Made by a program: the position numbers and the translations under genes
NCBI GenBank assembly: GCA_052426225.1
Contig: JBNJNM010000009.1
Location: 620,001 to 684,000, forward strand
DNA length: 64,000 nt
Origin: Zancudomyces culisetae HAW-14-8
Lineage: Eukaryota; Fungi; Kickxellomycota
Direction of reading: 5' to 3'
Part shown: positions 102 through 25,999 of the stretch, piece after piece
Numbering within the stretch: the stretch's first letter is position 1
How the letters are laid out: each line of letters begins with the position of its first letter
The notes under the pieces: generated by a model
Database searches by the model: none
The model's input: the letters and a program-made list of their open reading frames with translations, nothing else
Told to the model about the DNA's origin: nothing

Positions 102-457
102 TGTAGTTTGTCGTAATAATCATAATTCGTGTAACCATGATTATTAAGTTCATCATGTGTCATACCAGTTCGGGTATGACCACTTGATGAAGATGCACCA
201 CTACCCCGTAGTGTGATGTGCATATTAGGGTGCTCGGGTGAGCTGTTTCCCCTATACAATGTCGGTGAGATACTGCTCACGGACATTGGTTCTGGGCTCC
301 TACGGATTTGGAGTTGACGGACACTTTCTGTCAACTCCCCAAGAGTCCGAGGACTTAAAACCCCAGTCTCTTGGTCCATGCTACTAGCCGTGCTCAGGCT
401 GGAGCTAGTTTCAGAATCCCTCTTGGATTTGCTCTTGGTATAAAAGAAATAGTTCAT
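80..457 (-). CDS. LTR-encoded Ser-rich small protein, copy 1; about 116 codons inside the LTR, then read-through into the tRNA
   Basis: Clear homologue of ORF 12707-13120 with mostly synonymous differences in the core. GC-richer than the surrounding LTR. The stop at 80 lies inside tRNA-Glu and is therefore incidental. Confidence 0.7.
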   Translation of the reverse strand: MNYFFYTKSKSKRDSETSSSLSTASSMDQETGVLSPRTLGELTESVRQLQIRRSPEPMSVSSISPTLYRGNSSPEHPNMHITLRGSGASSSSGHTRTGMTHDELNNHGYTNYDYYDKLHPQWSSG

Positions 458-954
458 GATGTTTGGTTATTTATTATATGTATATACTTTTAAAGTTTGT
501 TTTATTGAGTTTATTAACTATACTATTTAATCCGTAAAGTAGGACATGGATAAAGTTACCTAATAGACTACTCTATCAATTATATATATGATTAAAAACT
601 TAAATGCTAACCTAGTTTTTCAATATAATAAATTAACTATAAACTATTATTATGCTGTTAAGTATGCTAATAGTTTTGTTCCATAATTGCAGCATACGTG
701 CAATTAAGATTATGTGTGGGAACACATAATCATTAAAATTATTTGATGTTCAGTATGAAAACATATTTCGTACTAGAATCATCATTATTGAATGGACTCA
801 GCATGTAGAATTTATTTCATGCTGAGTCGAAATTAATTTGAACAAATATTTAAACGACAATAAAAATTATAAAAATTGGCATTCCGCAATGAGTGTACAA
901 CAAAATTTCTTGTACACTATTCGATTTTGCATTACAATTCGGCTTATTGCGACA
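109..954 (-). mobile_element. Solo-LTR-like unit U1 (846 bp) carrying a small ORF
   Basis: Termini TGTCGTAAT...ATTGCGACA are imperfect inverted ends. Exact 4-bp duplication AGTT at 105-108 and 955-958. Homologous to the unit starting at 12763. Confidence 0.85.
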
Positions 955-958
955 AGTT

Positions 959-1355
959 TGATATAGCTTTCTAAATATATGTTTAAAAATAGACTATTAG
1001 CTAAACTATTATTTAATACTTATTAATTATAACAAAATCTTTAAATATTGTTTAGATAATACTGTGTTAATTTTAATAAAAGATTGGTGTCGTTACCATT
1101 TTGGATACTAAATCCTTCTTTTTATATTGAAATGACTATAAACATAAATGTTGTATAAAAGTATTCTAAAGTATAAAATATTCTCGATATTAGAAAAAGT
1201 CTAAAAACTAATTCGAGATTCCTAGTAATAAAAACTTATATTAAATATATAATTAAACGTTATCTAGAAAGTAATTAATAAAGTTTTAATAATTTGATAA
1301 TAATTGTTGTATTAACTCAATTCTAGATGAGGTGTACTTCTCTAAAAATATATCA
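959..1355. mobile_element. Solo-LTR-like unit U2
   Basis: TGATATA...TATATCA inverted termini, flanks AGTT / TGTT (3 of 4 match), AT-rich. Confidence 0.65.
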
Positions 1356-1360
1356 TGTTT

Positions 1361-1823
1361 TGTTAGCGAAACACAGGTTTACATCACAATATTGTTTATT
1401 ATATATTTATTTTGATAGATATACTATACTAAGTACTATGTTTAATATTGATTTCACTATAGTAACTATGCTAAAACAAATAGACCAAATTTAAATAAAC
1501 TATATTTATTTGATGATGTAATACTAAATGATTATCTAGCCATATTTATACATTTTAAAAATGACTATTACAATATTCTGAAATAATTTTATACAAATTA
1601 ATAAAATAATCCTATAAAATATATATTAAATTGAACTAGTGTGTTGCTGTAGAAAAAATCCAGAATGATAAAAAAAACTAGGCAACACATAATATAATAA
1701 ATAACCTATACTAAATAATATCTTATATTAAATGATAAACTAAATATTAATATAAAAGTATATGAATAACTGGTAAGTTAAAATTATATAATGACTAGAG
1801 GTAGCTCTAGCCACTATATAACA
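1361..1823 (-). repeat. 3' LTR of E1
   Basis: Direct repeat of 6294-6753, preceded on the minus strand by GGGAGGGCGTAC. Confidence 0.95.
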
Positions 1824-1835
1824 GTACGCCCTCCC

Positions 1836-4800
1836 TTAAGCGTGGATGCCCTCATCCCGCTCTCGATTTTTAAACCATTTTAATTTTGATTTGAGTGTTG
1901 TAGTCACTTCGGGGATCATGTTTGTACTTGAAATATACTTCTTCAGCATGTCGCCATTGACCAACTCTCGATTTCCGTTGAGGTCAAATATTATATAAGC
2001 CCCTTTGTTCAGTGCTCTTTCAACTTCATATGGACCTTCCCAATAGCTTTCGAATTTCGCTCGTTCCATTTCGACTCTTTTCAAAACTTTATCACCTATC
2101 TTAAATTTGTAAATTCGAACATCTTGATTATACCGTTTTTCCATATTTTTTTTAGCAATCACTGAATTTCGAAATGCTAAATTCCGTAATTCGGGCAAGT
2201 CGGTTTCGAAACACTTAACTCGACTCAATACATTCTCTTCGAAGTTTTCAATCTTACCGTTATATGTCCATGTGCTCGATAAATCTATTTTTATTCCATA
2301 CATTAGCTCAGAGGGTATTAGTCCTGTAGATTTATTTTTTAAGGTCCTAATTACTAATATGGTTTTCCAAATATATCTATCCCAGTTTTCTTTATAATAT
2401 TTGCATTGTTTAGTTAGTATGTTTACAAGTGTTCTATTTAGTCTTTCGACTTGGCCGTTACTTTGAGGCCGATATGAAGTCGTTGGTCTATGTTTTAATC
2501 CTAACCATTCAAAAACGTTTGTCGTACTATCCGAAACAAAGCTTGACCCTCTATCGCTAATAATTTGTTGCGGTACCCCGTAATTTGCGACAATTTCATT
2601 GATAATAAAATTAATTACTGTTTCACTTAGTAGATTTTTTACAGGAATGGCGATTGGCCATTTTGTAAAATAATCTACAGCAGTTAGAATGTACCTATTT
2701 TCATTTTTAGAAATTGGAGCGATTGGACCAATTGCGTCGATTCCAAAAATTTGAAATGGTTTACTTGTAAAAATCGGATAAAGTTCATTGTTTTTCGTTT
2801 TTCCACCCTTATGTAATTGACAAATATGACACGATTTAACAATTTCTATAACATCATTATACAAATTTTTTCCAGTATATTTTTCAGTGACACGCCTCCA
2901 AGTGTTTTCAATACCCTCGTGTCCTTCGTTATAAATATTTGAAATTATTTCTTTAAAATTTCGTTCATGTAAAACTTCCTTAAAAACTTTTTTTACTTTT
3001 TTAAATAATTTTCCATCCTTTAAATAATATTGTCTAGCTCGATTTCGAATCTTTTCACGGTTTTTTACTTCTGCACCTTTAGGATATTGCATTGTTGATA
3101 AGTATTGTAACACATCTACATATTCAATTATATCCATAGAACAAACATCCAATACAATATTATATTCATTATTTTCCACAGGCATGTTCCTAGATAACAT
3201 GTCTGCAGGATTCAATTTTCCTGGCAAATCTTCTATTTCATAATCATAACACCTTAGAATCATTGCCCATCGTGCAATTCGCCCAGTCAATTCAGTTCCA
3301 TTAAAGATTTGCAACAGAGACTTATGGTCAGTTTTTATTCTAAATTTTCTCCCCCATAAATAATATTTAAATTTCTTAACGGACCATACCACCGCTAAAG
3401 CCTCAAGATGGCTTATAGAATAATTTTGCTCAGCTTTATTTGTCGAACGGCTAGCATATTCAATAACTCTTTCTTCACCTTGAACTACTTGCGACAACAC
3501 CGCACCTATGCCTATTACTGAGGCATCAGTTGTCAATACAAACTCTTCATTCCAATCTGGGAAGCCTAATATTGGAGCAGTAACTAATTTTTCCTTTAAT
3601 TCACAAATAGCATCTTCATGTTCTTGGTCCCAACTCCATTTACAATTCTTGCGCAGTAGTTTGTTCAAAGGTGAGGTAATCTTAGAATAACCTTCTATAT
3701 ATTTTCTGTAGTACCCTGTTAAACCCAGGATGGATTGTAGTTCTTTAACAGATTTTGGTGACTTAATATTTTTGATTGCTTCAATTTTCTTAGGGCTTGT
3801 ACCAACACCTCTTTCTGATATCACATGTCCAATATATTCCAGTTTATGTTGTCCGATTACACATTTGTCTTTATGGAGTTGTACATTATGCTTTCTCAAT
3901 AAATTGAATACTTCAACTAAATCCTTTAAATGTTGTTCTTTATTTTGTGAATATATTATTATATCATCAACGAATACTATGGCTTTTTTCCAGAGAACTT
4001 CCTTTAGTACAATCTCCATAGCTCTCTGAAATGTAGCTGGACTATTAGTAAGTCCGAAGGGCATGACATTATATCGGTAAGTACCAGACCCTGGAATTGC
4101 AAAAGCTGTTTTATCTTTATCATCTTCTTTCATTTTAATTTGCCAGAAGCCGCTTAAAGCGTCTAATGACGTGAATATTGTTGAACCAGACAAAGACATA
4201 AATATATCATCGATTACTGGAAGTGGATACGAGTCTTTACGAGTAACTGAATTTAATCTTCTATAATCTGCACAAATTCTTAGATTCCCATTTTTCTTCA
4301 CAACCACGACAACCGGCGCACACCATTCCGAGATACAGGGCGAAATTACTCCTTTCTTCTCCATTTCTTCTAGTTCTTTGCGCACTCTTACTTGTGTTTG
4401 TTGCGGCATACGATACGGTCGAAGTTTTATAGGTTTGTCATCTGTTAAGTCAATTTTATGTTCTATGACATTAGTCTGTGTTAACTCAGTTATATCGTTT
4501 ACAAATATATCCTTGAAATCTTTGACTATATTTTTGAATTCTGTATCATACTCTGTTTCATACATTTGTACATCTTCCTTCAGTAAAAGATATATTTCTT
4601 TTTCTGATGTATAATTGCCTTTTTTATTATGAGTTGCCAGTTTAGTAGTTATCTCTGCGTGGTCAATAGGTAAACGCATTTCAGGTATAGCAAGATTTAA
4701 TGAAACTCTATGTTCGAGCAGCCAGTCCGTACCTAGAATAAGAATATCCTCATTACGATCCATAACCCACAAGTTTGCTGGGAAACTAAAAGATGATATC

Positions 4801-6215
4801 TTTAACGGCACTTCGCTTACTCTTCCTATTGTGGTATGACGCTTACCATCAGCAGTGACGATAACTTGTTTATTAAAATTATCAGGGCATAAACCCCATT
4901 CTTCTACTAAGTTTGTGGTAACCACGGAGCATGCCGCACCCGAATCAACAACAGCCCACAAACTTTGTCCAAACACTTTTACTAAAGTTTTGCAATTAGA
5001 TAATTTCCTTTCTTCAACATCAAACTCGTTTACCTCTGATGGTTTTTTATTTTGAATATATTTAACTAACTCCTCCTTCATTGAAGTAGAATTATCTAGC
5101 AACTGCAACACATTTACTTTGAGTGATATTTTTTCTAACTCTTCAACTAAGGAAAATGGTTTAGATGAATTAATATTTCCAGTTTCGGATGATGTAATTG
5201 TAGCTGAGATAGAGTTATCCTTTCTAATACTAGATTGACGGTTAACTTGTGATGGATCTAGTTCTTGAAGTCTCGGTCTACCAACCCTTTTTGGAACTTC
5301 GTTTTCATTTTCTGGGTTATTTTTTCTTTTATCGACAGCGAATACCTCATTTGGTTCTTCAGTAGTATCATCTGAAATTTGGATAAAATTTATACTTTTT
5401 TCCGACTCTTTATTAACTGTATTTGGATTATTTTTTCCCTCAAGTTGAGGGCATTGATATTTAAAATGACCTTCCTTTTGACAGTGGTAACAAACGAGCT
5501 TTCTAGGACCAAAGTATCTAGGTTTGTTAAAATCTACTTCTTTTAATCTCTTGTCAACAACCTCATCCACCTTATTTAGAAGATTGACACTAAGTTCGTC
5601 AAACATCTTTAAAAACTGACCAAAAGGTTTTTGATCTTTGACAACTTCTTTGACATTTTTTCCACTTTTACTAGCCGCGTTACGACTATATTCCCTGGGT
5701 TTTGAATCCATTTCCTTATTTGTAGACTTGTTATGACTAAGTGGTGATTTCTTTTCTTCTTTTAACATACGTGTAATAATGTTACTCCATCCAGTTATGT
5801 TTTCATCCTCAAGAATTTTTTTATATTTAGGTTGTAAAGTACTCGTCAACCAATCTGTTCTTATCCCATCGCTGGTAATTTCTGCCGTATCAAGCAGTGA
5901 CTCAAGCTCAAGCTCCAGCTCCTCGATAGTATCAAACCCAATTTGTTTAATTTCTCTGAGTCTATCCCATACTTGCGACTTTGACTTTTTAATTGCAAAA
6001 TTCTTCTTAAATAGTTCCACAAATATATCCCAACTGGAGAAATCAGATTTAAATTTCTTATATCAGATTTTTTCATTATTTCCAAGGTATAGCTTTACAA
6101 AGTCGATCCAATCTTCTTTACTCCATTTGTTCAACTTGGCCATAAGTCTGAATTCCTCGATCCATTCCTCAGGATCTGTAACAGTATTCGCCAAGAATAC
6201 TTTGGGTACATTCAT
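1836..6215 (-). pseudogene. Gag-Pol polyprotein of E1 (single frame, one in-frame TGA at 6063-6065)
   Basis: CCHC knuckle CYHCQKEGHFKYQC, protease VDSGA, RT FVDD, RNase H TDAS, integrase D-D-E core and GPY motif. ORFs 6063-6266 and 1836-6020 share a frame, and the TGA sits where sister elements have Trp (IWY/IWF). Confidence 0.9.
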
Positions 6216-6274
6216 CTTAATATGTAAATTCGTCGTAAAATTTATTACCAATAAATGGATAATCACAATTTACG

Positions 6275-6292
6275 ATCCTGTCGCTGACGCCA
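6275..6292 (-). other. Primer-binding site of E1 (tRNA-Ser-like)
   Basis: TGGCGTCAGCGACAGGAT is complementary to a tRNA 3' end ...TCCTGTCGCTGACGCCA, typical of tRNA-Ser. The identity is by recall. Confidence 0.75.
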
Positions 6293-6293
6293 C

Positions 6294-6753
6294 TGTTAGC
6301 GAAACACAGGTTTACTTCGCTATATTGTTTATTATATATTTATTTTGATAGATATACTATACTAAGTACTATGTTTAATATTGTTTTCACTATAGTAACT
6401 ATGCTAAAACAAATAGACCAAATTTAAATAAACTATATTTATTTGATAATGTAATACTAAATGATTATCTAGCCATATTTATACATTTTAAAAATGACTA
6501 TTACAATATTCTGAAATAATTTTATACTAATTAAATAAAAATCCTATAAAATATATATTAAATTAACTAGTGTGTTGCTGTAGAAAAAATCCAGAATGAT
6601 AAAAAAAACTAGGTAACACATAATATAATAAATAACCTATAATAAATAATATCTTATATTAAATGATAAACTAAATATTAATATAAAAGTATTGAATAAC
6701 TGGTAAGTTAAAATTATATAATGACTAGAGGTAGCTCTAGCCACTATATAACA
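6294..6753 (-). repeat. 5' LTR of E1
   Basis: Direct repeat of 1361-1823, followed on the minus strand by G + TGG PBS. Confidence 0.95.
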
Positions 6754-6757: not shown

Positions 6758-7129
6758 TGTAATATAAATAGCTTTATTTATATATTTTAATGTTGTAGCA
6801 ATATAAACATTCTTCTATTTCTTAGTATTATCTTAAACTAAATACTCTTTAAGCCTAGAAGCCTTATTAGATATATTGTGTGTTAGAATCATTTATTTCT
6901 AATAATTAAACTGAAAAAATCTGATAGTAAAACTCTCACAAAAACATACCAAACCTATATAAACATACTATGATAAAATTTTAAGTGGATACAATTATTA
7001 CTGTTTACCACTTACGTAATTTTATACAATAAAAACTAAATATATTTTAAACATTTAATTAACTAGAAAAATTTCACTAAACAACTAAATAAAAATAAAC
7101 ATATTAGAAAATAAAGGTACTATATGACA
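6758..7129 (-). repeat. 3' LTR of E2
   Basis: Direct repeat of 11479-11849. Confidence 0.93.
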
Positions 7130-7141
7130 GCACCCCCCCTC

Positions 7142-10100
7142 TCAACCGAAAATGTCCTCATTTTGTCGAACTTGTTTATAGGTATGCAACTTGGGCCTGA
7201 GACGACTGGTAATTTCAGGAATCATAAACTTCGATTCATAATATAGCTTTAGTAAATCTCCATTTACTAAATCACGATTCCCGAGATGATCTGAAATGAG
7301 GTAAGCACCCTTCGTGAAACGTTTAAGAATAGTAAAAGGCCCTTCCCATAGATTTTCCAACTTACCACGCTCGTACTCAACTAATTTTAATACCTTATCA
7401 CCAACTTGAAATTTAGTAGATTTAACTGATTTATTATACCTTACTTTCTCTGCTTCTTTAGCTGCAACGGCTTTTTGAACTCCAATCTTTCTCAACTGCG
7501 GTAAGTTACTTTGCATCAATTTTAACCTACTTTCAATCTGTTCTACTTCATTCTCGATGATACCGTTCGTTTGCCAAGTCGAAGGTATTAACATGTCCGT
7601 ACCGTACATCATTTCTGCTGGTGTGTAACCTGTACTCTTACTCTGCATAGTCCTCATAATCAACAAAACCTTCCACAAGTATCGGTCCCAGTTGCCCTTG
7701 TCCTTGCGGCTGATTTTTTGAAGTAAGTTCATCAATGTTTTATTCAACCTCTTAACCTGTCCGTTACTTTGCGGACGGTATGAAGTTGTTGGACTGTAAT
7801 TAATCTTTAGCCATTCAAATACTTCAGTTGTTATGTTGCTAACAAAACTAGATCCCCTGTCCGTTATGATCTTCTGGGGTACTCCATAGTACGTAACAAT
7901 ATTATTAATAACAAAATCCACTATTGTCTCACTGAGTAGGTTGTCGACGGGAATGGCGATAAGCCATTTAGTACAATAGTTAATCGCTGTTAGGATATAA
8001 CGGTTTCCCGATTCTGATACTGGGTTGATAGGACCAATTGTGTCCATACCCAGAACTTCAAACGGCTTCACTGCATGAATCGGCTCCAAAGGATGTTTTC
8101 TGCTTCGCCCATCCTTGAACACCTGGCAGGTGTGACACCGCTTCACATAGTCCGTTACCTGCTTGTATAAACCTCTACATACGTGTTCGCTACTTACTCT
8201 TATCCAGGTATTCTCTATTCTTTTGTGTGTTTCGTCGTGCACACTCCTTATTAATTCCAAACGTTCGACTTCTGAAATAACTTTTTTAAGCTTTCCTTTG
8301 ACCCACTTGTAAATTATTCCATCCTTCAATAAATACGATTTTGCTTTCTTGATTATTTTTAGAATATCTTCTTCATTCAAGTCCTTAGGCAGCGCACCTT
8401 CTACTAAAAATTGTTTCACTAAATCGTCTTCGTTATACTTCATAGTAAATACCTCGACTGAATCTTCTTCCTGCCCCTGTGAAACTCCGTTTCTTGACAA
8501 ATGGTCGGCTGGGTTAATCTTTGCTGCTATATGTACTATTTCAAACTCGTAGTTTCTTAAGAACATTGCCCATCTGGCGAGTCTACCACTTAATTCTGTC
8601 CCGTTAAACATATTTAAAAGTGCTTTATGATCTGTTTTTATAGTAATTTTTCTACCATATAAATAAAACTTAAACTTTTTAACTGCCCATATGACCGCCA
8701 AACCCTCTAAGTGACTTATAGAGTAGTTTCTCTCCGCCTTGTTTGTCGTGCGACTTGCAAACTCTACTGGTCTTTCTTTACCATCTATTACTTGAGATAA
8801 TATAGCCCCTACTCCACTAACTGCAGCGTCGGTCGTAACTATAAACGGGTGGTCCCAATCTGGATGCGCGAGTATAGGAGCCTCTGTCATCACTTTTTTC
8901 ATTTTCTGAAAGGCTTCTTCTTGCTGTGACCCCCAATTCCATTTAACTCCTTTCTTTAACAACTGTGTTAACGGACCTGCCAAAACTGCATATCGTTCTA
9001 TAAATTTTCTATAATAGCCAGTCATACCTAAAAATGACTGCACTTCCTTAACGCTAGATGGTGGTCTCATTTTAGTTATTGCCTCAATCTTGTCTGTACT
9101 TGTAGCAATCCCCTTACCAGAAATTACATGACCTAAGTAATCTATTTCTGTTAGTCCTATCTTGCATTTATCCTTATGTAATTGTATTTTTCCTTCTTCT
9201 AAAAGCCCTAATATCTCTCTTAAATCCTGTTCGTGACACTCAAGACTTTTTGAAAAGACAATAATATCGTCCACAAAAACCACAGCTTTCTTCCACAACA
9301 CTTTTTTAAGAACCGTTTCCATTGTACGCTGAAATGTTGAGGGGCTATTCGTCAACCCAAAAGGCATGACATTATATTAATAGCATCCTCCTCCTGGCAA
9401 TGCAAATGTAGTTTTTTCTTTATCGTCTTCAGCCATTTTAACTTGCCAAAAACCGCTGAGCGCATCTAAAGTTGTAAAGATGCACGCACCGGCTAAGGCC
9501 ATAAACAAATCTTGAATTATCGGCAACGGGTACGAATCTTTAATTGTTACCGCGTTGAGTTTTCGATAATCAGCGCATATGCGCAACTTACCATTTTTTT
9601 TCTGAACCACTACAACCGGAGAGCACCATTCCGCGTTGCTGGGCGCTATAACATTTTGAGCCAACATTCTATCAATTTCTTTACCCACCTCCTCTTGTAA
9701 ACGGAAAGGAATCCTATATGGACGCTGCTTTATAGGTCTGTTTTCTGTGAGTAAAATCTTGTGTTCTGTCACGTCCGTTTGCTTTAGCTGATCAATATCT
9801 TCTACAAATAATTTTTCATAATCTTGTAAAACTGCTTTTAACCCACTAGATAATTCTCCCTGTATACCAACCGGCGCTTCTGTGACTAGGTATAAATCCC
9901 ATTCTTCCCGTGGCTTGGCACTTTCTTTAGTTGTTACCAACTGCGTAACAACCTCAGCCCGATCAACTGGAAGTCTTAATTCAGGTATTGCTAGATTTAT
10001 ACTTGCTTTATGTTTCAAAAGCCAGTCCATACCCAATATAATAGTTGGTATCGCGTTGCCTAGTACTACCAACGAAGCCTTAAACTCTATCCTGCTTATC

Positions 10101-11437
10101 ATAATAGGAACTTCAGTAACCACACCTAGAGTTTCATGTCTTTTACCGTCTGCAGTGATAATAACATGTGAGCTCTTATGGTTTGGTTCCAATCCAATCT
10201 TATTCAGCGCACCCGTGGTTATCACTGAACAAGCTGCACCGGTGTCCACCACCGCCTTCCATTGTAACTGATAAATTTCCACCGTCATACTACAGTTTGT
10301 AGTAGTTTTCTCCTGTAACCTAATCTCATTAATCGCTGCCCTAGGTGCTACTTCAGCTATATTTCTCCAATCCTCAGCAATTTTTTCTGAATTTTGTAAC
10401 AGCTGAATCATACTAATCTTAGGGTAAACTTTTTCTAACTCCTCTCTTAAATTAAAACTTTTATTTTTTTCAACGCTTGGCACGCCAGGGCGGTTTACCT
10501 TTTCAATACGAGCTCCACTATCCTCCTGTTCACTAGTATTGCGAGATTTCACAGGTCTTCCTACCCTCACCAATTGTTCATCTGCCTTTCTCTTTTCCAC
10601 CATAAGAACTTCATCAGATTCCAGTACTTCTTTATCCACTGATATATAATTCACCTTTTTATCTGAACTCTCTGACTTCAGTTGAGGACACTCGAATCTC
10701 CTATGCCCTTTTGCATGGCAATATTAACACTCCCACGTGTTTGGGCGCTCGACTTTAGCGCTACTTCTTGACGTGATATTCGCCACTACTGTCTTGTCTA
10801 ACTTTTCTAAGAGACTAACACTAAGGTCTTGAAACGTTCTTAGGAATTCACCAAACTGTGCGGATTCTGTTGTAAGATCTTTTACAGATTTTCCTGCTCT
10901 AGAAGCGGCATTCTTAGTTGATGCCTTAGTAGGCTTCCCAGATTGCTGAACAGCATTCTTGATACTACTTCCTTGCTCCAGCTTAGTAACCAACTGAATC
11001 ACTTGCTCCAATGTCAAATCGTCCCTGTCTGCCAGCTTTTCTCGAATATCATCCGAAAAAGTGCTAATAAGTGAACCCAACTTGGTCACTTCTTCCTTAA
11101 TACCTACCTGATTTCATAACTTTTCTAGTTCCATCTCCAACTCGTCTAGACTACCGAAATCTGTTCGCTTGATGGTCCCTAGTCTACTCCAGGCTCTACT
11201 AGTAGTTAAAACAGAACTAAACTTTTTAGTAAACTCCTTTGAGAATGCCTCCCAATTAGTGAAACTCTTCTTATTCCGCTTGTACCAGATAGTTTCAGAC
11301 TTCCTAAGCCACAGATTAACTAATCCTACCCAATCTGCATGATTCCACTTGTTAATTTTCGCAATGAGCTGGAAATCTTCTAACCAGTCTTCGGCACTAG
11401 TACCATTTCCACTCTCAAAGATTGTAACTTTATCCAT
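7142..11437 (-). pseudogene. Gag-Pol polyprotein of E2 (single frame, three in-frame stops)
   Basis: ORFs 11114-11437, 10724-11089, 9377-10654 and 7142-9367 are all in one frame. Zn knuckle C*YCHAKGHRRFEC, VDTGA, FVDD, RNase H, integrase and GPF motif are present. Confidence 0.9.
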
Positions 11438-11456
11438 TTTTAATTAATATTATCCA

Positions 11457-11477
11457 CGATTCCGGCAGAAGGCACCA
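11457..11477 (-). other. Primer-binding site of E2 (tRNA-His-like)
   Basis: TGGTGCCTTCTGCCGGAATCG is complementary to ...CGATTCCGGCAGAAGGCACCA. The GGCACCA end is typical of tRNA-His. Confidence 0.7.
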
Positions 11478-11478
11478 C

Positions 11479-13544: not shown

Positions 13545-13545
13545 A

Positions 13546-14241: not shown

Positions 14242-14258
14242 TGGTGATCCAGTCAGGA
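14242..14258 (+). other. Primer-binding site of E3 (tRNA-Val-like)
   Basis: TGGTGATCCAGTCAGGA is complementary to ...TCCTGACTGGATCACCA, resembling fungal tRNA-Val(UAC) 3' ends. Confidence 0.7.
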
Positions 14259-14301
14259 CATAATTTGCTTGTGAAAAAACTTTAATGCAGATTAAAAACT
14301 A

Positions 14302-17300
14302 ATGATTTCTATAGAGAAATTTTGTGCCGCTACAATCGACGATCCAAAAGAGTGGATCAAAGGATTCAGGCTATTCTTTAAACTAAATAGATATGACGAG
14401 GAGGATGGGATAGATTTAGTTCAGTTCTATCTCGGTATTCAAGAAAAGATATGGTATTTGAGAAACAGAAAAAAGTTTACAAACTGGGAAGAGTTAAAGA
14501 AGCTATTTATTGAGAGGTTTGTCAGTAAGACATCAGATCATAAGGCTATAGAGAAGTTGAAGAATATTAACCAGCAAGATTTTGACTCCACAGACGAGTT
14601 CGTTTTTTCTTTAGAATTGGCACTATCTAAGTGCAGTATAAATGAAGAAGCACAAAAAGTAAATTGATTAATCAGTGCGGCAAGCCCTAGAAGTCGGTCA
14701 AGAATTTTGGAATCTGAATCGCGCGAATGGGACAAAGTAGTTAGTTTAATCACTACTAGTTTCGAACCTTCGGCAGACAGCCGCAATTCAGACGTGCCAC
14801 GAGATAGCAATAACAACCAGTATCGCACACAAGGAACAGGAAAGTCTATAAAGGAAATGACAGAGCAAAAAATTGGTTATAATGAAATGTTATCAAAGAT
14901 GGAAGAGTGGAGTGTGAATATTCTGACTAAGGTAGAGGAAGTAGTAGAGAAAAAAGTGGACAAGCTACTTAGTGAAAGGGTTTACCAGCGTCAGCAAAGA
15001 ACTCCATATTGCACCAACTGTAAGGTTTCAGGCCACTATAGACACCAATGCACTTCCGCTACTCCTAGCAAACCGGATAATGACCAACCTAAAAAAGAAC
15101 TTAACACTATTGAAGTTGTTTCCGATAATGAAGTAGATAATGATTTTTATTTGGTACAAAGACCTAAGCCAAATAAACAGGTAAACAAACCATATTCAAA
15201 AAATAAAACTCTAGTAGATAAAAAATTACCTGAAGTGAATAAACCTACTTCAGTAATTAAAACAATAAAGTATGTTAAAATGGAGGAGATAACGATATAA
15301 AAATGAATACAGAGAGTTCAGTGACAAAGCAAGTTGAAAACAGTACAAATAAAAAAGTAAAGTATGGCACTCGAATTTCAGAAAACATAACTCCATTCAA
15401 CATACAAAAGGATTTAAATCAATATTATCCAAAAATCAGTTTAGCACAACTTTTAGACGCATCCCCAACACTCAGTTCAGAATTAAGTGCTCTGTGTAAA
15501 AAGGTTAAAAAACTAGATATAAATGAAATCAGAGTACTTCCTCAGAAAATTAGCAATTGTCGAGTGCTAGTTTCAGTTTTTAACAGGAAATACTGGGCAG
15601 TGGTGGACACAGGTGCTGCGTGCTCAGTGACTACACCAGCTATAGCAGAACAATGGGGTTTGGAGCCAAATGAGTGGACTAAACAGGTGTTGGTGACAGC
15701 TGACGGAAGTAGACATTTGACAGGAGGTGTACTTAATAGAGTCCCTATAGTAATTGGAAATCACACTTTTGAAGCCGAGTTTATTGTAATGAACCGTAAA
15801 GATAATACTTTAATTTTAGGCAACGACTGGCTCTATCGACATCATGCAGTTCTTGATCCTCGTAGTGGCGAGTTAAAAATGAATACTTACTCCGAACTTT
15901 TGATAGTACCAATGAAGTCTTTAGCCGAGAAGTCTGAAAGTATTACGTTAGACTCAGAACTGTACTTACTGTTAAAGGCAGATGAAGTAATAGACTTGAA
16001 GAACGCATTTAGCGATCCACGTTTAACAGAGTTAAAAGAATTAAATAAAGATTTATTTGTTAGTGACATAGGTGAATTAACACAAACAGATACAACCGAA
16101 CATCGAATTGAATTAACGGATAACACACCGATTAAACAACGTCCGTACCGTATACCCCATCATATGTTACAGCTAGTACGAAACGAATTGACTGAGATGG
16201 AAGCGAAAGGAATTATTTCTCCCTGTTACTCCGAGTGGTGTTTTCCTGTAGTGATTGTACGCAAAAAAAACGGTAAACTCAGAATCTGTGCCGATTACAG
16301 AAAGTAAAATAATGTCACCAAAAAAGATGCGTATCCACTGCCAACTATTGACGACATCTTTATGACTCTTTCGGGAAATATAATATTCACTAGCCTTGAT
16401 GCCCTCAGTGGCTTTTGGCAGATAAAAATGGCGGAAAAAGATCGAATGAAAACAGCGTTTGCAATCCCCGGCAGCGGTAGCTATTGCTACAACGTTATGC
16501 CCTTCGGCTTAACCAATAGTCCGGCATCCTTTCAGCGTCTTATGGAGGTTGCATTGGCTCCAGTTCTGTGAAAAACTGCTGTTGTGTTTATAGACGACGT
16601 CATAATTTATTCTAAATCTATCGAGCAACATTTAGTACATCTACAAGAGGTATTTGATTTATTACGAGAAAATAAAATTCAGTTACATGCTGACAAGTGT
16701 CAAATAGGTATGAAGAAGATCAGCTACTTGGGACACATGGTATCCGCAGAAGGAATAAGTACAAGCAGCAAAAAAATAGTAGCGATAAGGGAAGCTAAAA
16801 CTCCTACAAACGTAAGAGAGTTGCAGTCGTTTCTGGGTCTAACCGGCTATTATCGGAAGTTTGTCGACAACTATGCGTTAAAATCAGCACCCTTAGTTAA
16901 GTTGTTAAAGAAGACAGAAGTATGGAACTGGACAAACTTACAGGACGAAGCGGTACAGAAGCTAAAAGATAGTTTGAGTAGTGCACCTACACTAATACAC
17001 CCTAATTGGGATGAAGAGTTTATTCTGACTACCGACGCTTCTATCGAGGGAATCGGTGCTATCTTGTCGCAGAAGATCGAAGGCGGTGAAAAACCTATAG
17101 GTTATGCTAGCAAAGCTACAAACAAACACGAGCGAAATTATTCGGTCACTCACCTTGAGGGTCTTGCTGTAGTCTGGGGCGTCAACAAATTCAAACACTA
17201 TTTACGGAGTAAACATTTTTTAATACGAACAGACCACAAGTCACTAGTTAACCTATTTAATAGTAAAGAAGTTACCGGTCGTGTCGCTCGATGGGCGATG

Positions 17301-18617
17301 ATTTTGCGAAATTACAATTATACAATCATACACTGTGAAGGTAAATCGAATCCGGGTGACGCCTTGTCGAGATTAGAGGTTGTTACAACGTCGGAAGAAA
17401 CACTTGATATATTTGAATTACATTTTTTATCTTATGAATCTATAAAACACTATTTATTAAACAATCTTATTTGTTCGAAATGAGCAAAACACAAAAAACA
17501 AAGTCAAAAAAAAAGCAAAAAATTATAAAATTATACAAAACAGTTTATTTAAAATTAGCAAAGGAGTTTGGAAAAAAGTTTTATATAACAGCGAAATAGA
17601 AGATATAGTAAAACAGGTACACGAAGAAAATCATGAGGGCATAGAAAACACCTGGCGGAGAGTTAGCAGAGAGTATACAGGCAACAGACTATTCGAAACA
17701 GTGAAAAAAACCGTCAAGGAGTGTCTAACTTGTCAAAGTTATCAAGGGCATCGCACTAAGCGCAACGAGCTACAGCCTATTTATGTGTACAAACCTTTTA
17801 GTATTTTTGGTCTCGATGCTATTGGACCAATAAGTCCAATATCTAAGCATGGCAATCGTTTTATACTTACTGGTATCGACTATTTCACGAAGTGGCCTGT
17901 CGCGGAGGCAGTACAAAACATCCAGTCAGACACTATAATAAACTTTATTATCACTCATATAGTTAAAGATTTTGGTACACCAGATCAGATTATCACTGAC
18001 AGAGGTGCTGGCTTTATTAGTGAAGCTGCGGACAACTTTTATAAATATTTAGGTATACGACACACACCGACAACTTCCTACCGACCGCAAAGTAATGGTC
18101 AGGTAGAACGTCTAAACCAGACCTTAAAAAACATTCTAGCTAGACAGTGCAAGAAGGATAAAGAAAACTGGGACACTTACATGTGGAAAAGTCTCTTAGC
18201 AATTCGAACAATGCGTAATCGCAGTACAGGCTATAGTCCCGCTGAACTTCTTTACGGTGTTAAAATCACTACACCGGCAGTATGGTCTCCTCCAGCTGAG
18301 TCGAGCGATCTTGACTCCGCTATACAGGAAAGAATCGAAGCTATCGGAACAAATATACCGGAACTAAGAAATATAGGGTTATCTCGCAGTGTTAAAGCTA
18401 AGCAGATTATGAAATCACATTATGACAAAAACATTACAAATTTCAAATTTAAAGTATATGAGATGGTTATGAAGCTTGTAGAACACGTCACAGACAAGTT
18501 TCAAGAAGTATGGGAGGGCCCATACAAGATAGTACAAAAATTAAATTTTGGAGCTTACACAATCATGGATTCAGATGGCAATCGCGACATCGTCAATGGA
18601 GATTCCCTAAAGCAATT
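14302..18617 (+). pseudogene. Gag-Pol polyprotein of E3 (in-frame stops, two frameshifts, truncated)
   Basis: Fragments carry CTNCKVSGHYRHQC, VDTGA, FIDD, TDAS, integrase and GPY. Stops at 14665, 16305 and 16569. Frame changes near 15300 and 17480. Confidence 0.9.
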
Positions 18618-18849
18618 AATTTCGATAGTAAGTTTTGGTTCTTATCTTATCTTTTTAGAAAATAAACACATATACTAAGAGTTTGCACTATTTAGCCATT
18701 AGTAGATATTTTTAAGATCATTAAAACGGATTAAGTGAGCTCATTAATCGAAGCGACAAGTAGATTCTACGCCACTTATATCCCTAAAACCAACTTAACT
18801 ATTTAATAAACGGATTTTCTATATTAACATACAAATTCGTTAACACACA

Positions 18850-19252
18850 TGTCATATAGCGAAATGTATGTGTTGGATTTTTTTCCGAAAGGTTTTTTTT
18901 ATCCAATCTAACACCTATCAATAGTTTATTTTTATTCTTAATTATTTAGTATTTAATATCAAAAAATGGCACGTAGGTGCAGAGAAAAAACAACATATAT
19001 AATTAGTTTTTTGAATCTAACTTTTTTTACATAATCAATAACTATTAGTTTTATTCTTATTACCTAATAGCACTATCGTAAATAAACAAATCAAGATTAA
19101 TAGTATAAGTATCTAAGTATAAATATAATAATTAAAACATAAACAAGCATACACGGTTAAGATACTAGCTACACAACCGGAACCAGAAGTAGCTGAATTA
19201 AACAGCAGGCTACTCAAACGTACTGATCAGATAGTACATAAAAAATATAACA
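18850..19252 (+). mobile_element. Solo-LTR-like unit U7
   Basis: TGTCATATAG...TATAACA. Exact TSD CACA at 18846-18849 and 19253-19256. Confidence 0.8.
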
Positions 19253-19257: not shown

Positions 19258-19810
19258 TGTTATATAATGAGTAAACATACCTATATGTTTATCATTTATA
19301 TAAATATTTATATGATTTTATGATATTTTCTTGTAAATATTTATTATTTATCATATTATACTTAATTGTTTGACTTAATTGTTTAATATTTGTTTGTAGT
19401 TTATACATATTTATTTATTATTAGTAAACACAGAAGTAGTCTGTGCATATTTTATTAGTATATTTTAAGTAGTATTTGTTTATGCAAATCATGAATGTTT
19501 GCATATGTTTATTTATTTGTAAAAATCATGTTTAGTTTTTTTATCTTTATGGTTTTTCTATGACATGATAAGAAAGTAAAAAAAAAGTAGTTTATTAGTA
19601 TAAATTAATTTCTATTAGTATTTGAATTTTGTATAAATAGGTTGTTTAAAAGACCTAATAGAAAAATACCAATTTAATAAAGTTGGTTCTACACAGGAAC
19701 TTATAGTATTATAGTGAAAACTTATAATAAAATAGTATATAGTATAATTACTAAAATAGTTTCCAACTAATTGATAAAACAAAAATTCTCAATCTGAGCT
19801 TTTGATAACA
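19258..19810 (+). mobile_element. Solo-LTR-like unit U8
   Basis: TGTTAT...ATAACA. TSD ACAT at 19254-19257 and 19811-19814. Confidence 0.78.
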
Positions 19811-19813: not shown

Positions 19814-20067
19814 TGTTGTATGCCTACAATAGGTGAAACATTTCCATTGGTTAATTGTGTTTTGTAATTTTTAGTTAGATTTTTTGTAGATTTTATTGTA
19901 TAAAATTGAAATTTTTGTTTAACTAAATAAATGTCCTCTTTTGCCTAATCAAAATAACTATATAATAATTCGCAGCATATAGTAAAAGGTAAGTAAAATG
20001 ACCCATCCCGTGTGTTATTTGGTGTAAAAAACACTAAATGGGACGTTAAACATGGCAACACACAACA
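19814..20067 (+). mobile_element. Solo-LTR-like unit U9
   Basis: TGTTGT...ACAACA. Its 3' end GGACGTTAAACATGGCAACACACAACA resembles the end of U11. An alternative end at 20060 would give a CACA duplication. Confidence 0.7.
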
Positions 20068-20070: not shown

Positions 20071-20436
20071 TGTCGTATAGTGCCAAATACGACTTTATTC
20101 AAACATTTTTAGTTATTTTAATACTTAGTTTTATTGGTTAATTGAAATAATATTTTTTAGGAATTTTATTGGTTTAATTACGTAACCGTAAATAAGTGAA
20201 ATTATTTCGGTTTCGATTCAAAATATATTTAGTATTTATTTTAGAGGAAGGAGAAAAGAGAGAGATATCAGATTCGAGATATAACAATAAAAATAGGTTT
20301 TGGAAATTCAACGTAATTATTGATTACGCGATTCAACGACTATATAGTATTTAAAATATAACGATAATACTAGTTATTGAACAATTATATATATATATTA
20401 AACAAATAAAGTATAAATAAATTCATTTATACAACA
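20071..20436 (+). mobile_element. Solo-LTR-like unit U10
   Basis: TGTCGTATA...TATACAACA. TSD AAAC at 20067-20070 and 20437-20440. Confidence 0.8.
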
Positions 20437-20440: not shown

Positions 20441-20663
20441 TGTTATATAGTGGAATTATATACCTGTATTTCCTTGTATTTTATTGGTTAATTTAATAAG
20501 TATTATTTTAAGCATTAAATAGTCTAGTTTTGAATTAATTAATAAATTGTCTTTTTCTCCCACAATAATTATAGTACTATTATATAATAATAAAAGTCCC
20601 GTCCTGTATAATACTGGGTTATTATATTACTCAGTAGGACGTTAAACATGTAAATATACAACA
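20441..20663 (+). mobile_element. Solo-LTR-like unit U11
   Basis: TGTTATATA...TATACAACA. TSD AAAC at 20437-20440 and 20664-20667. Homologous to U4. Confidence 0.85.
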
Positions 20664-20667
20664 AAAC

Positions 20668-21056
20668 TGTCGCATCAAAGATCGACAGATGGGCGTCTCA
20701 CTCGGGTTATAGCGAGTGAGATGTGATGATTTACCTAGTGCTTTTCACCTATGAGGTTTTTCACTATGCGTAAATCATCATTTCCCAAATATTAATTAAT
20801 TTCGGATGGTTTTTATATTATTCATAGTATTTTAATATATTAGTATATACGAGGAAAATGCATTTAAGCACTGCTTTTTCTCTTCTATGTTTTTAGCATC
20901 TTATTTTCGGATTAGTATATAGTATACACTTTATTATAATAAAACAATATTAACAAAAGAACTAAGGTCCTACCGCTTACTGGTAGTAAATAAACATAAT
21001 ACTAGTGAAAGCAGTAAAGTCGGATAAGACCGACAAACGGAAAATAAATTCCGACA
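20668..21056 (+). repeat. 5' LTR of E4
   Basis: Direct repeat of 25603-25991, TGTCG...CGACA. Confidence 0.97.
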
Positions 21057-21057
21057 G

Positions 21058-21075
21058 TGGGGGCTTGACCGGGGA
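21058..21075 (+). other. Primer-binding site of E4 (tRNA-Pro-like)
   Basis: TGGGGGCTTGACCGGGGA is complementary to ...TCCCCGGTCAAGCCCCCA, typical of tRNA-Pro. Confidence 0.75.
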
Positions 21076-21214
21076 CAGCCAAAAACATCTTAATAAAGAA
21101 AATAAAAATTCAAAAAATAATAATAAAGTATTAATTAACCAGCACACAGTTGTCGAAAGTATTACCAATACTAAGACACTACGAGAATTTGTCAATTCTA
21201 AGAGACCAGAAATC

Positions 21215-24200
21215 ATGCAGTTACCAAAATTTGATTCCAAATCCATGATGGATGCTACAGAATGGATTGAAGACTACGAGTTATTAGCATCGTACAACAG
21301 GTGGAGTGATACAGAGAAAGTGGAGTTTATGCGCATTTACTTAGGAACCAAGGAGACCATTTGGTTTAGGAAGTACAAAGGAAAATTCAATAACTGGGAA
21401 ACCACTAAGACAATGTTTACAAACAAGTTCAAAGAAGAGGACAGCAAGTATGCAGTGTGGGAGAAACTCAACGGAATGAAGTTAGACGAATACCAGGACA
21501 TGGATGAGTTTGAATGGGAGTTAGAGGAGTTATTTGAGAGGGCAGGAATTAAGGATGATGACTACAAACTTAATTGTTTTGTAAGAACAATTAACACATC
21601 ACTGAGAACCCAAATAAACAGTACCAATCCCAAAACATGGGAAGAGGCTTTTGTTCTGATTAAAAACCTTTTAACTACAAAACAAGTGAACAAAGTTGTC
21701 GTTAAGGACAGTACACAAAGATATACTGGAATTTCAGTAGGGCCAGTTATGGAGAAGTCGCAAATAAAAGAAGAAGAATTGGAAAGCAAGATTGAGGACA
21801 GGTTGCTAGGCAGGTTGGAGAAATTATTTGCAGCACAGCGTGCAGATATTAATGCAGACGTAGATAAATTAATCGAGTGTAGGTTCAAGGAGCGAGATGA
21901 ACGTGATAGGAGACAAGGACAGTATAACAAGATTGTGTGTGAATCTTGCGGAATACGAGGGCATAATAAATATGAGTGCAGAAGAAGAAATGGTGGTACA
22001 AACAACCGCGAGGACCAAAAGGTAACTAACCCAAATGTGAATATAGTGGAGTTAGTAGAAGAAGCGGGGAACGTTGATGAAGAAGTTTTTGCACTTGAGA
22101 AACGCCGCAGAGAGAGTGAAAGTTCACAGAGGGAAAGCGGAAAACGTAGTAAAAATAATAACCAAGAAGGACAAGTTTCATTGCAAAATATTGAACCCAG
22201 TGATCCAACAAACTTACTTGCAGATACTAATAACAACACAAATATTAGAGCAGCTAGTAAAAACGAGTTTTCACTGGCCGAAGAGTTGAAAAAAATGCAG
22301 ATCAAAATATCCTTACCTCAACTTTTGGATATTTCTCCAGCAATGTGCGACGAGTTTTACACGTTTGGAATTTCGGCAAGGCGGCCCGACGTTAACGAGT
22401 TAGTCGTTGACAGCATGCAAAGCACCAACTGTAAGGTTAAAGTAACTATTTTTGGAGTAGTAGCGGCTGCCGTAATCGATACAGGAGCTGCATGCTCGAT
22501 AATAACTTTAAAATTATTAAATAAATGTGGAATTGAGGCGGACAAGAAAAGTACTCAGTCTATAATCACAGCAGACGGCAATCGCCATCCGGTACTGGGT
22601 ATTGTACATGACGTACCTATAAAAATATCAGATACAACTTTTCCAATAAACTTACTGATTATCAACCGTGATGACGATGCGCTTATTTTAGGAACCGATT
22701 GGCTCGTAAAATATAAAGTAAAAATTGATCTTTCAGTTCCAAAGTTAATACTACCTCTGGAAAATTCGGATATCCACATAATGCTTAATCTTTTTATACC
22801 AGTCGAATTAAGTAATCACAAAGAAACGGAGGTCTATTTTTTATTAAAAGAATGTCAAAGTGAATCAGATGAAGACATTATTTTAAAAAATATGTATACA
22901 GATCTTTTGGAAGAATATAAAGATATTTTTGTAAGTGATCTGCAAGAGCTAACACAAACAACAGTAGCCGAACATATAATTACATTAACTGATAATAATC
23001 CAATCAAGCTCCGACCTTATAGAATACCCAAAACATTGCAAGAGGAAGTTAAAAAGGAACTTAAGCTCATGGAAGAAAAAAAAATCATATCACCATCGCA
23101 ATCGGATTGGTGTTCTCCACTGGTGGTGGTGTGGAAGAAAAACGGGAAGATGAGGATCTGTACAGACTACAGACGTCTTAATGCTATAACCAAGAAAGAC
23201 GCATACCCTCTCCCATCGGTGGAAGACCTATTCATGGCGTTGTCAGGTGCTAGAATATTTAGCACACTTGACGCCATGAGTGGGTTTTGGCAGATCAAAT
23301 TAAGAGAACAGGATAAAGAGAAGACAGCGTTCTCCATTCCAGGACACGGAAGCTTCCATTATAACGTCATGCCGTTTGGCTTAACCAACAGCCCGGCAAC
23401 GTTTCAAAGGACCATGGAGAAGGTCCTGTCCCCAGTTTTGTGGAAGTCAGCAATAGTTTTTGTAGATGATGTAGTTGTGTTTTCTGACTCTCCAGAACAG
23501 CACAAAGAAGATCTTAGGACAGTATTTAACCTATTTAAAACGCAAAAAATCCAACTGCATAGAGACAAGTGTCATATTGGAAAAAGGGAAATCGAGTATT
23601 TAGGTCACCACATTAGTGACAAGGGAATTTCAACCAGTAAAAGTAAAGTTGAATCAATAAGTAAAATAATAGCACCAACTAATGTTAAAGAATTACAATC
23701 AGTATTGGGATTATTAGGTTACTACCGTAAATTTGTAAACAACTTTGCGAGCATCGCTAAACCACTTACAACATTATTAAGAAAAAATACAGCATGGAGT
23801 TGGGACAATGAGAAACAAGAGTCACTAAATATTTTGAAGCAGGCATTGATGGAAGCACCTGTTCTAATACATCCGGACTGGACAAAGCCATTTGTCATAA
23901 CCACAGACGCAAGCAAAAACGGTATAGGCGCAATTTTATCACAAATGACTGCAACTGGTGAGAGACCAATCGAATATATCAGCAGAACCACAAACGTTCA
24001 CGAACAGAATTATTCCATCTCACACCTCGAAGGACTTGCAGTGGTGTGGGCTGTGACAAAATTTAAGTACTACATTTGGGGAACCAGGTTTACAATACGA
24101 ACCGATCACAAATCACTTATGCAACTATTCAACAGCGCAGAAATCACAGGTAGGCTGGCCCGGTGGGCCATGATTTTGCGTAACTATGATTACGACTTGG

Positions 24201-25588
24201 AACACATAGCGGGTAGCACAAACCCAGCGGATATCTTATCACGTAATCCTTTAACCGTAGCAAACGAGGAACCCTTAGAAGTTTATTCAATTGATTTGGC
24301 ATGGTACGAAGCAATTAAACATTTTATCAGCACCTCAGAGTATCCACACAATGCAACACCGGAAATCAGGAATAAAGTAAGGAATAGAGCCAAACAAGTT
24401 TTAGTCAAAGGAGGGAAGCTTTATAAGAAAGTTGGACAACAGTACAAAGAATTATTACATGAAGTTAATGTTGAGTTAGAGGTGAGGAAAATACATGACG
24501 AATGTCATGAGGGCATTAGAAGTACACTGAGAAGAGTTACCGAAAAATACTGTGAAAGAGGGTTATTCAAAGTTGTTGAGAAGGTAGTAAAAACATGTAA
24601 TACATGTCAGTTTTATGATGGAGGAAAATCTAGAAAACATGAATTGGAACCGATTATAAGCTCAAGACCATTCGAAATTTTCGGCATAGACGCCGTGGGT
24701 CCTATTTCACCTGTAACAGAAAGTGGCAATAGGTACATTTTGACTGCAATAGATTATTGCACAAAATGGCCTGTAGCGGCAGCAGTCTCTAACATCACCA
24801 GTGAAACAATTATCAGCTTCATCATGAACCATATTATTCAGCATTATGGCATTCCGCAGCAGATAATAACCGATCGAGGCTCCGGCTTCGTAAGTGAGGC
24901 TACCACTAATGTATTCAATTGGTTAGGAGTTGAACACACTCCGAGTACCTCCTACCGACCGCAAAGTAACGGCCAGGTAGAGAGGTTAAACCAGACACTT
25001 AAGAATACTTTACGGAAACAATGTAGGACTGACATGAAAAATTGGGATCTTTTTCTTTGGAAATCATTATTGATAATAAGAACATTGGTATCCAAATCGA
25101 CTAAATATAGTCCAGCACAGTTACTATATGGAATTCAACCACAGTTATCAACAACATGGAAATATAATGGCGAGATAGAGAACGAAGAAGAGCTAGTCAA
25201 TTCTCGTATTTTAGCCATAAACGACCAATTACCCGAACTTAGAAAATTAGCTCACCAGCATAACCTAGTAGCAAAAAAGCGTGATGAAAAAAGCTATAAT
25301 AAGAGAGTAAAGATATTTAAATTTAATATTGGTAATACTGTACTTAGGTTAGTAGAAGGAGATAAGTTAAAGCTAGGCAAAACATGAGAAGGACCATACC
25401 AAATTACTAGGGAGTTAAACAAAGGGGTTTATGTAATTACTGATAACACAGGAAGGAGAGAACTGTGTAATGGAGACAGCCTGAAACTGTACCGCGAATT
25501 CGAGCACATGATTCCAGATGTAGGCCCACGACTGCAAACTCGACTTAGAAGATTCAAACAAATTCGCGACCCTTCAATTCGCGCTTAA
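21215..25588 (+). pseudogene. Gag-Pol polyprotein of E4 (single frame, one TGA at 25385-25387 in the WEGPY motif)
   Basis: The ATG at 21215 aligns with the sister Gag starts. CESCGIRGHNKYEC, IDTGA, FVDD, TDAS and integrase are present. The frame continues EGPY... to TAA at 25588, next to the PPT. Confidence 0.92.
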
Positions 25589-25602
25589 AGGGGGGGGAGA
25601 AC

Positions 25603-25991
25603 TGTCGCATCAAAGATCGACAGATGGGCGTCTCACTCGGGTTATAGCGAGTGAGATGTGATGATTTACCTAGTGCTTTTCACCTATGAGGTTTTTCACT
25701 ATGCGTAAATCATCATTTCCCAAATATTAATTAATTTCGGATGGTTTTTATATTATTCATAGTATTTTAATATATTAGTATATACGAAGAAAATGCATTT
25801 AAGCACTGCTTTTTCTCTTCTATGTTTTTAGCATCTTATTTTCGGATTAGTATTTAGTATACACTTTATTATAATAAAACAATATTAACAAAAGAACTAA
25901 GGTCCTACCGCTTACTGGTAGTAAATAAACATAATACTAGTGAAAGCAGTAAAGTCGGATAAGACCGACAAATGAAAAATAAATTTTGACA
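25603..25991 (+). repeat. 3' LTR of E4
   Basis: Direct repeat of 20668-21056, ending 8 nt before tRNA-Met. Confidence 0.97.
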
Positions 25992-25999
25992 AAACATGT

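Follow-up and report, generated by a model that had tools for sequence, protein, structure and literature searches.

How did nearly all of the DNA between two divergent tRNA genes come to consist of retrotransposon sequence, laid end to end with no element lying inside another? The question is raised by a stretch of the genome of Zancudomyces culisetae HAW-14-8 (Harpellales), JBNJNM010000009.1 positions 620,001-684,000 of the forward strand, which we refer to as the window (64,000 nt). In it, the 5' ends of tRNA-Glu and tRNA-Met face one another across 25,898 bp, and 25,824 bp of this interval are taken up by 15 abutting units: four Ty3/gypsy elements and 11 solo long terminal repeats (LTRs), representing about 12 families. 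We consider it highly probable that these 26 kb are the product of repeated integration, directed to RNA polymerase III (Pol III) genes, by diversified Ty3/gypsy retrotransposons.

An earlier note on this DNA had described four gag-pol elements and about 11 solo-LTR-like units that abut rather than nest between the two tRNA genes, and our parse confirmed that description. Four LTR pairs identified by repeat analysis and self-BLAST define the elements E1-E4, and the 11 remaining units match multi-copy LTR families elsewhere, with copy boundaries falling at the same bases in whole-assembly searches. No unit of the stack is broken by another, and the spacers within it are only 3-8 nt long. The proposal that all units are bounded by TG and CA held for 14 of the 15 and failed for M3, whose ends are decayed. 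As had also been proposed, units whose sense is known point toward the tRNA of their own arm (9/9). The polarity switch sits between M4 and E3, where only CATTG (5 nt) separates the two arms and none of the original intergenic DNA can be recognised.

The short spacers carry a record of how the units arrived. When units were stripped from the tRNA outward, perfect 4-bp target-site duplications were recovered for eight of 14 units, namely E4, R5 and R4 (AAAC), R3 (AACA), R2 (ACAT), R1 (CACA), U1 (AGTT) and M1 (TGTG); for 14 units, at least eight perfect 4-bp flank matches would arise by chance with a probability of about 4e-15. The 4-mers listed in the earlier note (AGTT, TGTG, CACA and ACAT twice each and AAAC four times) were all found at the junctions claimed for them. 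The junction of R3 and R4 is direct evidence of order, with the tRNA-proximal unit being the younger: R3 is at present flanked by AACA and AACT, and removal of R4 together with one duplication copy leaves AACA on both sides. R4 is younger than R3 because it entered inside the duplication of R3 and altered its right-hand copy. The right-arm junctions fit one history, in which six insertions all occurred at -8 to -3 from the mature tRNA-Met 5' end. Duplications were 4 bp wherever they could be read (AAAC, AACA, ACAT, CACA, AGTT, TGTG, CTGT, GCGA, ACAG, TTTT, AATA and AGAT), and the 5-bp duplication of Ty3 and Tj1 was not found here. Other arrays, parsed in the same way for shared 4-bp duplications, gave abutting stacks with consistent duplications upstream of tRNAs at four further loci (L004, L016, L020 and L028) and in a second stack on the same contig (C9:219448-239999).

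This second stack indicated how the insertion site is chosen. Its tRNA-proximal element, A, has 100% identical LTRs and is flanked by GCGA. The left GCGA is the cut end of an older LTR, whose family terminus is normally GCGACA, and the right GCGA is followed by CA, then ACA, then the tRNA, so that the cut was made at -9 to -6 even though this position lay within the previous LTR. Newcomers cutting inside the end of a previous LTR also explain the 5-6 nt LTR-end remnants (CGACA, GCGACA, ACGACA) that stand beside at least eight other tRNAs. In a closer class of insertions the LTR end is only 3 nt from the tRNA (four cases), and two of these duplicate the first tRNA base (ACGG at L004 and ACAG in the second stack). 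The site is set by distance from the tRNA, not by a sequence motif. In at least 12 LTR families the cut is staggered by 4 bp; relative to the mature tRNA 5' end it falls mostly at -10 to -4, and in one class at -3 to +1. A new insertion enters the few bases that separate the tRNA from the end of the previous LTR, and at times it removes 1-4 bases of that LTR. Because each newcomer lands between the last LTR and the tRNA, older units are displaced outward and never nested.

Across the assembly, tRNA genes were sampled as the top scorers against Rfam (63 candidates scored), chosen without regard to repeats and taken with 451-nt upstream pieces; distances were measured from mature tRNA 5' ends, not from transcription starts. 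The LTR end of a repeat family lay 2-14 nt upstream in 33 of 49 independent tRNA transcription units, which is a lower bound, as the repeat library covered about 1% of the genome. The median distance was 8 nt, and 28 of the 33 fell within 6-10 nt. Insertion within a few bases of the tRNA 5' end is therefore found at many tRNA genes, in the range that marks targeting of the Ty3/Tj1 type (some 5-17 bp before the mature 5' end), and the LTR families are not randomly dispersed. Among proximal LTRs whose sense was known from full-length copies, 14 were forward and 2 reverse (P=0.004), forward meaning that the 3' LTR lies beside the tRNA and that both are transcribed in the same direction. All full-length elements directly at tRNAs were forward.

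The youngest family, found with a protein query annotated from Z. culisetae, has copies that are 99% identical to that query, each in a 1479-aa open frame. Four copies were known beforehand to end about 420 nt before a tRNA, which gave a prediction for eight further copies: a tRNA on the same strand about 420 nt past the end of pol. In seven of the eight the tRNA was exactly there, with spacers of 7-9 nt and at least six isoacceptor types among the seven. The sole exception, an older copy (98%), has a stop codon and a later LTR after its own, and had therefore already been displaced. In all, 11 of the 12 copies checked lie directly at a tRNA in forward orientation. Two suggestions of the earlier note are thereby borne out. 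Many families do reuse one position-specific site, with an orientation that is biased rather than absolute, and newcomers do land proximally and push older units out, as seen from the duplication chain, the fixed-distance cuts into previous LTRs and the position of the youngest family.

Could the elements instead be aimed at LTR ends, at LTR-LTR junctions or at repeat-rich chromatin, with tRNAs merely bounding the island, as at fission-yeast centromeres? All junctions have the form CA-N3-8-TG, a shape that might itself be the preferred target; the distal element of the second stack, whose LTRs are identical, occupies the precise junction of two LTRs; and 14 repeat-dense 10-kb loci have no Pol III gene inside. 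At least nine of those 14, however, have a facing tRNA within 30 kb in a partial tRNA list, where about 5% would be expected by chance, and they are probably the inner parts of deep stacks. Single LTRs also adjoin tRNAs with unique DNA beyond them, the distance from cut to tRNA is constant whatever the sequence, even inside an LTR end or over the first tRNA base, and the youngest family sits at tRNAs. A centromeric reading was rejected, since stacks occur at many sites per contig. Taken as a whole, we regard aiming at repeats as very improbable and retain targeting of the tRNA genes themselves.

Several observations nevertheless weigh against a stack that was built by tRNA-directed insertion and preserved in order. 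No perfect duplication was recovered for six of the 14 units: U2 and E1 agree at 3/4 positions, and E2, M2, M3/M4 and E3 mismatch. Together with the shortened LTR of E3 and the meeting of the arms at CATTG, these unmatched units show that recombination and deletion have erased part of the record; part of the stack is rearranged or mutated. LTR divergence gave a mixed picture. In both arms the proximal full-length element is the less diverged (98.5 vs 96.9% LTR identity in the right arm, 97.2 vs 94.6% in the left), and in the left arm identity drops with distance from the tRNA (rho -0.98), whereas the right-arm gradient is flat (rho -0.58, not significant); the gradient identities mix two measures, the best other copy or the unit's own LTR pair, and are only suggestive. 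In the second stack, 100% identical LTRs are likewise found on a distal element, beyond which come three solo LTRs and then A. This apparent contradiction is softened because the intervening solo LTRs are 98.7-99.9% identical to their best other copies, and the pattern reflects either very fast turnover or the refreshing of some copies by recombination. The two reversed LTRs among 16 make orientation a strong bias and not an absolute rule, and selection after insertion could also account for the bias. Three copies of 5S rRNA, all within ribosomal DNA (rDNA) repeats, had no LTR or repeat upstream, so that targeting of all Pol III genes is not established; this evidence is weak, and homogenisation of rDNA may hide insertions. 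Finally, a Pfam search detected no chromodomain in the integrases, so the contact mode of Ty3 is not established for these elements, and the order of the stack was read from the assembly alone.

This last point bears on the idea that the stack is an assembly artefact of wrongly concatenated repeats, in a region that is nearly 100% repeats. We find this scarcely credible. The published assembly was made from PacBio HiFi reads (PMC12611240), each junction has its own short duplication fitting a single insertion history, and the same architecture recurs at dozens of tRNAs. In the independent assembly of Smittium culicis, a full-length relative whose LTRs are identical sits just upstream of a tRNA cluster and in the forward sense, its junction falling in a run of N that makes the distance unreadable.

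The unmatched flanks of E2 and E3 and the shortened 3' LTR of E3 bear on a different account, in which stacks with LTR families in common would have exchanged and rearranged sequence by recombination and gene conversion, producing most of the unit order, and position would be no record of arrival. It could also draw on the separation of the arms by only 5 nt with the original intergenic DNA unrecognisable, on the existence of tandem arrays with shared LTRs, and on the identical LTRs of both distal and proximal elements in the second stack. The eight perfect duplications of the window are mutually consistent, however, as are those at the four other loci and in the second stack; LTR divergence agrees with position in both arms; and the youngest family is proximal. 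Recombination accounts for losses, not for order, and we judge this account unlikely. The earlier note's picture of a chronological log of invasions thus survives in that order is recorded, and fails in that the record is lossy, E2, M2 and E3 having no matching duplication and E3 having lost about 135 nt; its likening of the stack to a CRISPR array may serve as an analogy only.

The coding capacity of E1-E4 identifies the elements that built the stack. Their open reading frames (ORFs) encode protease, reverse transcriptase, RNase H and integrase in the Ty3/gypsy order, and Pfam domains on E1 and E4 follow the order zf-CCHC (E1), RVP, RVT_1, RT_RNaseH, Integrase_H2C2 and rve. In E1, E3 and E4 the 5' LTR is followed by a TGG... 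sequence resembling a primer-binding site (PBS), and in E4 the 3' LTR comes after a purine run. Direct LTRs bounded by TG...CA, a PBS, a polypurine tract (PPT) and the domain order are thus all present, as in Ty3/gypsy elements (Metaviridae), and the integrase core aligns to that of Ty3 in PDB 7Q5B (E=1.6e-17). To judge from position, the Pol III initiation machinery (TFIIIB/TFIIIC) may place the integrase complex, as it does for Ty3 and Tj1. Recombination between LTRs would then convert most elements to solo LTRs, and recombination among stacked relatives would remove entries and make tandems that share an LTR. The tRNA genes would stay functional throughout, because their promoters are internal.

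The coordinates of the units and of the two anchoring genes are given in Table 1, and several units deserve comment. U1 belongs to a young family, whose other copies are 98-99% identical and whose full-length copies have LTR starts 5376 bp apart. It is related to M3 (68% identity overall), and the two have in common a GC-richer block of about 290 nt with 76% identity (window 138-428 and 12795-13085). The tRNA-facing end of M1 is the same end that faces the tRNA at four other tRNAs. E1 and E4 each retain a single ORF, a gag-pol frame of 1394 aa in E1 and a frame of 1460 aa in E4, which also has its polypurine tract and primer-binding site. The pol of E2 is broken into two ORFs. E3 has pol in at least three ORF pieces and a 3' LTR without about its first 135 nt; we explain this by a simple loss and reject the possibility that E3 is a recombinant with a foreign 5' LTR. 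R5 represents an abundant element with two 223-bp LTRs around about 560 bp that hold a PBS and a PPT and have no coding capacity, a TRIM-like structure (terminal-repeat retrotransposon in miniature). It often adjoins tRNAs, and was seen at about -1014 to -8 from a tRNA-Arg (L028) and at about -12942 in the second stack; presumably it borrows the integrase of an autonomous relative.

Table 1. Units of the stack, its terminal spacers and the anchoring tRNA genes (positions within the window)
Feature	Position	Strand	Remarks
tRNA-Glu(CTC)	30..101	-	ARAGORN and Rfam, 57.5 bits; left-arm anchor, 5' end toward the stack
Spacer TGTAGTT, 7 nt	102..108		AGTT at 105-108 is the tRNA-side copy of the U1 duplication
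U1, 846-bp solo LTR	109..954	-	Duplication AGTT/AGTT; sense from a full-length copy in L001
U2, 397-bp solo LTR	959..1355		Flanks AGTT/TGTT, agreeing at 3/4 positions
E1, full-length Ty3/gypsy	1361..6753	-	LTRs 463 bp, 97.2% identical; flanks GTTT/TTTT
E2, Ty3/gypsy	6758..11849	-	LTRs 372 bp, 94.6% identical; flanks TTTT and TGTG, mismatched
M1, 686-bp solo LTR	11854..12539		Duplication TGTG/TGTG; best other copies 93-94% identical
M2, 216-bp solo LTR	12544..12759	-	Inverted relative of R5 (84%)
M3, solo LTR of about 760 bp	about 12763..13526	-	Other copies about 92%; ends decayed, boundaries uncertain by a few nt
M4, old 342-bp solo LTR	13531..13872		Innermost unit; 83% to a copy in L013
E3, defective Ty3/gypsy	13878..18845	+	5' LTR complete, 363 bp; shared 228 bp 96.9% identical
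R1, 403-bp solo LTR	18850..19252		Duplication CACA/CACA
R2, 553-bp solo LTR	19258..19810		Duplication ACAT/ACAT
R3, 254-bp solo LTR	19814..20067		Duplication AACA, restored only upon removal of R4
R4, 366-bp solo LTR	20071..20436	+	Duplication AAAC/AAAC; left copy uses the final A of R3
R5, 223-bp solo LTR	20441..20663	+	Duplication AAAC/AAAC; abundant short TRIM-like family
E4, full-length Ty3/gypsy	20668..25991	+	LTRs about 390 bp, 98.5% identical; duplication AAAC/AAAC
Spacer AAACATGT, 8 nt	25992..25999		Holds a copy of the AAAC duplication, at -8 to -5 of the mature tRNA-Met 5' end
tRNA-Met(CAT)	26000..26073	+	ARAGORN and Rfam, 65.4 bits; right-arm anchor

Further features of the window and the assembly were noted alongside. 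A tRNA-like 5' half lies at window 1-27 on the minus strand, after tRNA-Glu, and is seemingly a second tRNA clipped by the window start; the window also holds an XPB helicase gene whose nearest relatives are those of Harpellales fungi. Many tRNA genes of the assembly form same-strand tandem pairs 1-7 nt apart, repeatedly Ala-Lys, and also Gly-Pro and Lys-Arg (L004, L021-L027, L046-L048, L070 and L001), which are probably dicistronic. The tRNA cluster of S. culicis, Val-Glu-Met, has spacers of 2-3 nt. Two Ala-Lys pairs about 30 kb apart and inverted (L023, C21:2978271-2983917, and L051, C21:2949140-2949590) have upstream 400 nt that are 100% identical, the sign of a recent inverted segmental duplication. 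The 5S rRNA genes recur every 13.2-13.3 kb or so on small contigs (C1:10608, 23885 and 37067; C4; C22:388481) and are, from this recurrence, linked to the rDNA repeat rather than dispersed.

Two other repeat arrangements were seen. In tandem arrays at C6:1001075/1006451/1011827, C12:1000162-1014673 and C12:1891118-1898669, each element has one LTR in common with the next; the spacings are 5376, about 4712 and 2379 bp, and at least one array ends at a tRNA; such tandems are expected when copies of the same family stack at one site and neighbouring LTRs recombine. A different, old family of solo LTRs occupies the downstream side of tRNA genes: at 13 of the 18 tRNAs examined, a member lies some 10-120 nt past the gene, in either orientation. 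The family's LTR is about 435 bp long with TG...CA ends, and at least 45 copies were found at 78-88% identity, none of them seen as a full-length copy; its sites include window 26166-26601 (+), L003, L012, L016, L020, L024, L027 and others. It makes up a second lineage, one whose targets lie downstream, and in its position it is reminiscent of Dictyostelium Skipper-2 and TRE3.

These data extend precise Pol III-directed integration, known in budding and fission yeasts and in social amoebae, to the Harpellales among the early-diverging Zoopagomycota. They provide a second natural case of the same-direction rule that has been called unique for Tj1, and with many families involved, the asymmetry of contact between integrase and Pol III becomes open to comparative study. 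A fixed site keeps insertion order without nesting, which makes it simple to put transposon invasions in order and to date them. Most tRNA genes here carry an LTR end as their upstream sequence, which may affect Pol III initiation, and the stacks explain the loss of most retroelements from short-read assemblies of Z. culisetae. More tentatively, and as a possibility that we hold to be rather doubtful, the Harpellales may host an independent, highly diversified and still-active radiation that targets tRNA starts with a Tj1-like orientation and a 4-bp cut. The upstream DNA of about two-thirds of tRNA genes would have been replaced, LTR ends and Pol III initiation would be co-evolving, and the stacks would be datable records and possibly sources of silencing small RNAs.

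Among known systems, Ty1, Ty2 and Ty4 insert anywhere within about 1 kb upstream of tRNA genes in yeast, often one inside another. Their hotspots resemble the present stack in that elements of several families and solo LTRs accumulate beside tRNA genes; they differ in that the site here is fixed to a few bases, which is why the units abut in order. Ty3 of Saccharomyces cerevisiae (PMC5911963; PDB 7Q5B) is alike in gene order, in integrating a few bases from the Pol III start and in leaving the internal promoter intact. It differs from the elements described here in its 5-bp duplication, in inserting either way round and in its very low copy number per genome. Sequence identity to Ty3 is low, and the common mode of targeting may reflect either common descent or convergence.

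The closest system is Tj1, a Ty3/gypsy element of Schizosaccharomyces japonicus whose insertions fall 5-11 bp before the mature tRNA 5' end and always run the same way as the tRNA (PMC4600332; review PMC5911963); about ten related families sit in clusters with the tRNA genes of its host (Guo, Singh & Levin 2015, PMC4600332). The median distance of 8 nt, the 14:2 excess of forward LTRs (11/11 in the youngest family) and the presence of at least 12 families all recall Tj1. The two systems differ in the duplication, which is 5 bp for Tj1 and 4 bp here, and in 5S genes, which Tj1 also hit and which were clean in the three copies seen here. The host of Tj1 is an ascomycete and Z. culisetae a zoopagomycete; the tRNA clusters of S. 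japonicus are centromeric, whereas stacks occur here at many dispersed tRNA genes; and the targeting of Tj1 is known from de novo events, that of the present families from genomic copies. We found no literature combining Harpellales, tRNA and retrotransposons, and the Z. culisetae assembly paper (PMC12611240) mentions neither tRNA nor LTR.

In Dictyostelium, several families (DGLT-A, Skipper-2 and TRE) likewise target tRNAs up- or downstream, and Spaller et al. (2016, PMC5006619) note that an insert arriving later at a given tRNA pushes earlier ones away. As described there, DGLT-A differs from the elements studied here in inserting 13-33 bp upstream in either orientation and in having no full-length copies, and no description of stacks of 15 ordered units with intact duplication chains was found there. 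The principle of displacement is therefore already known from Dictyostelium, and what is new in Z. culisetae is the host lineage, the number of families and the depth of the stack. Against Ty3 and Tj1, the families of Z. culisetae stand apart by their 4-bp duplication, by the number of them that are young at the same time, and by how deep and how ordered their stacks are.

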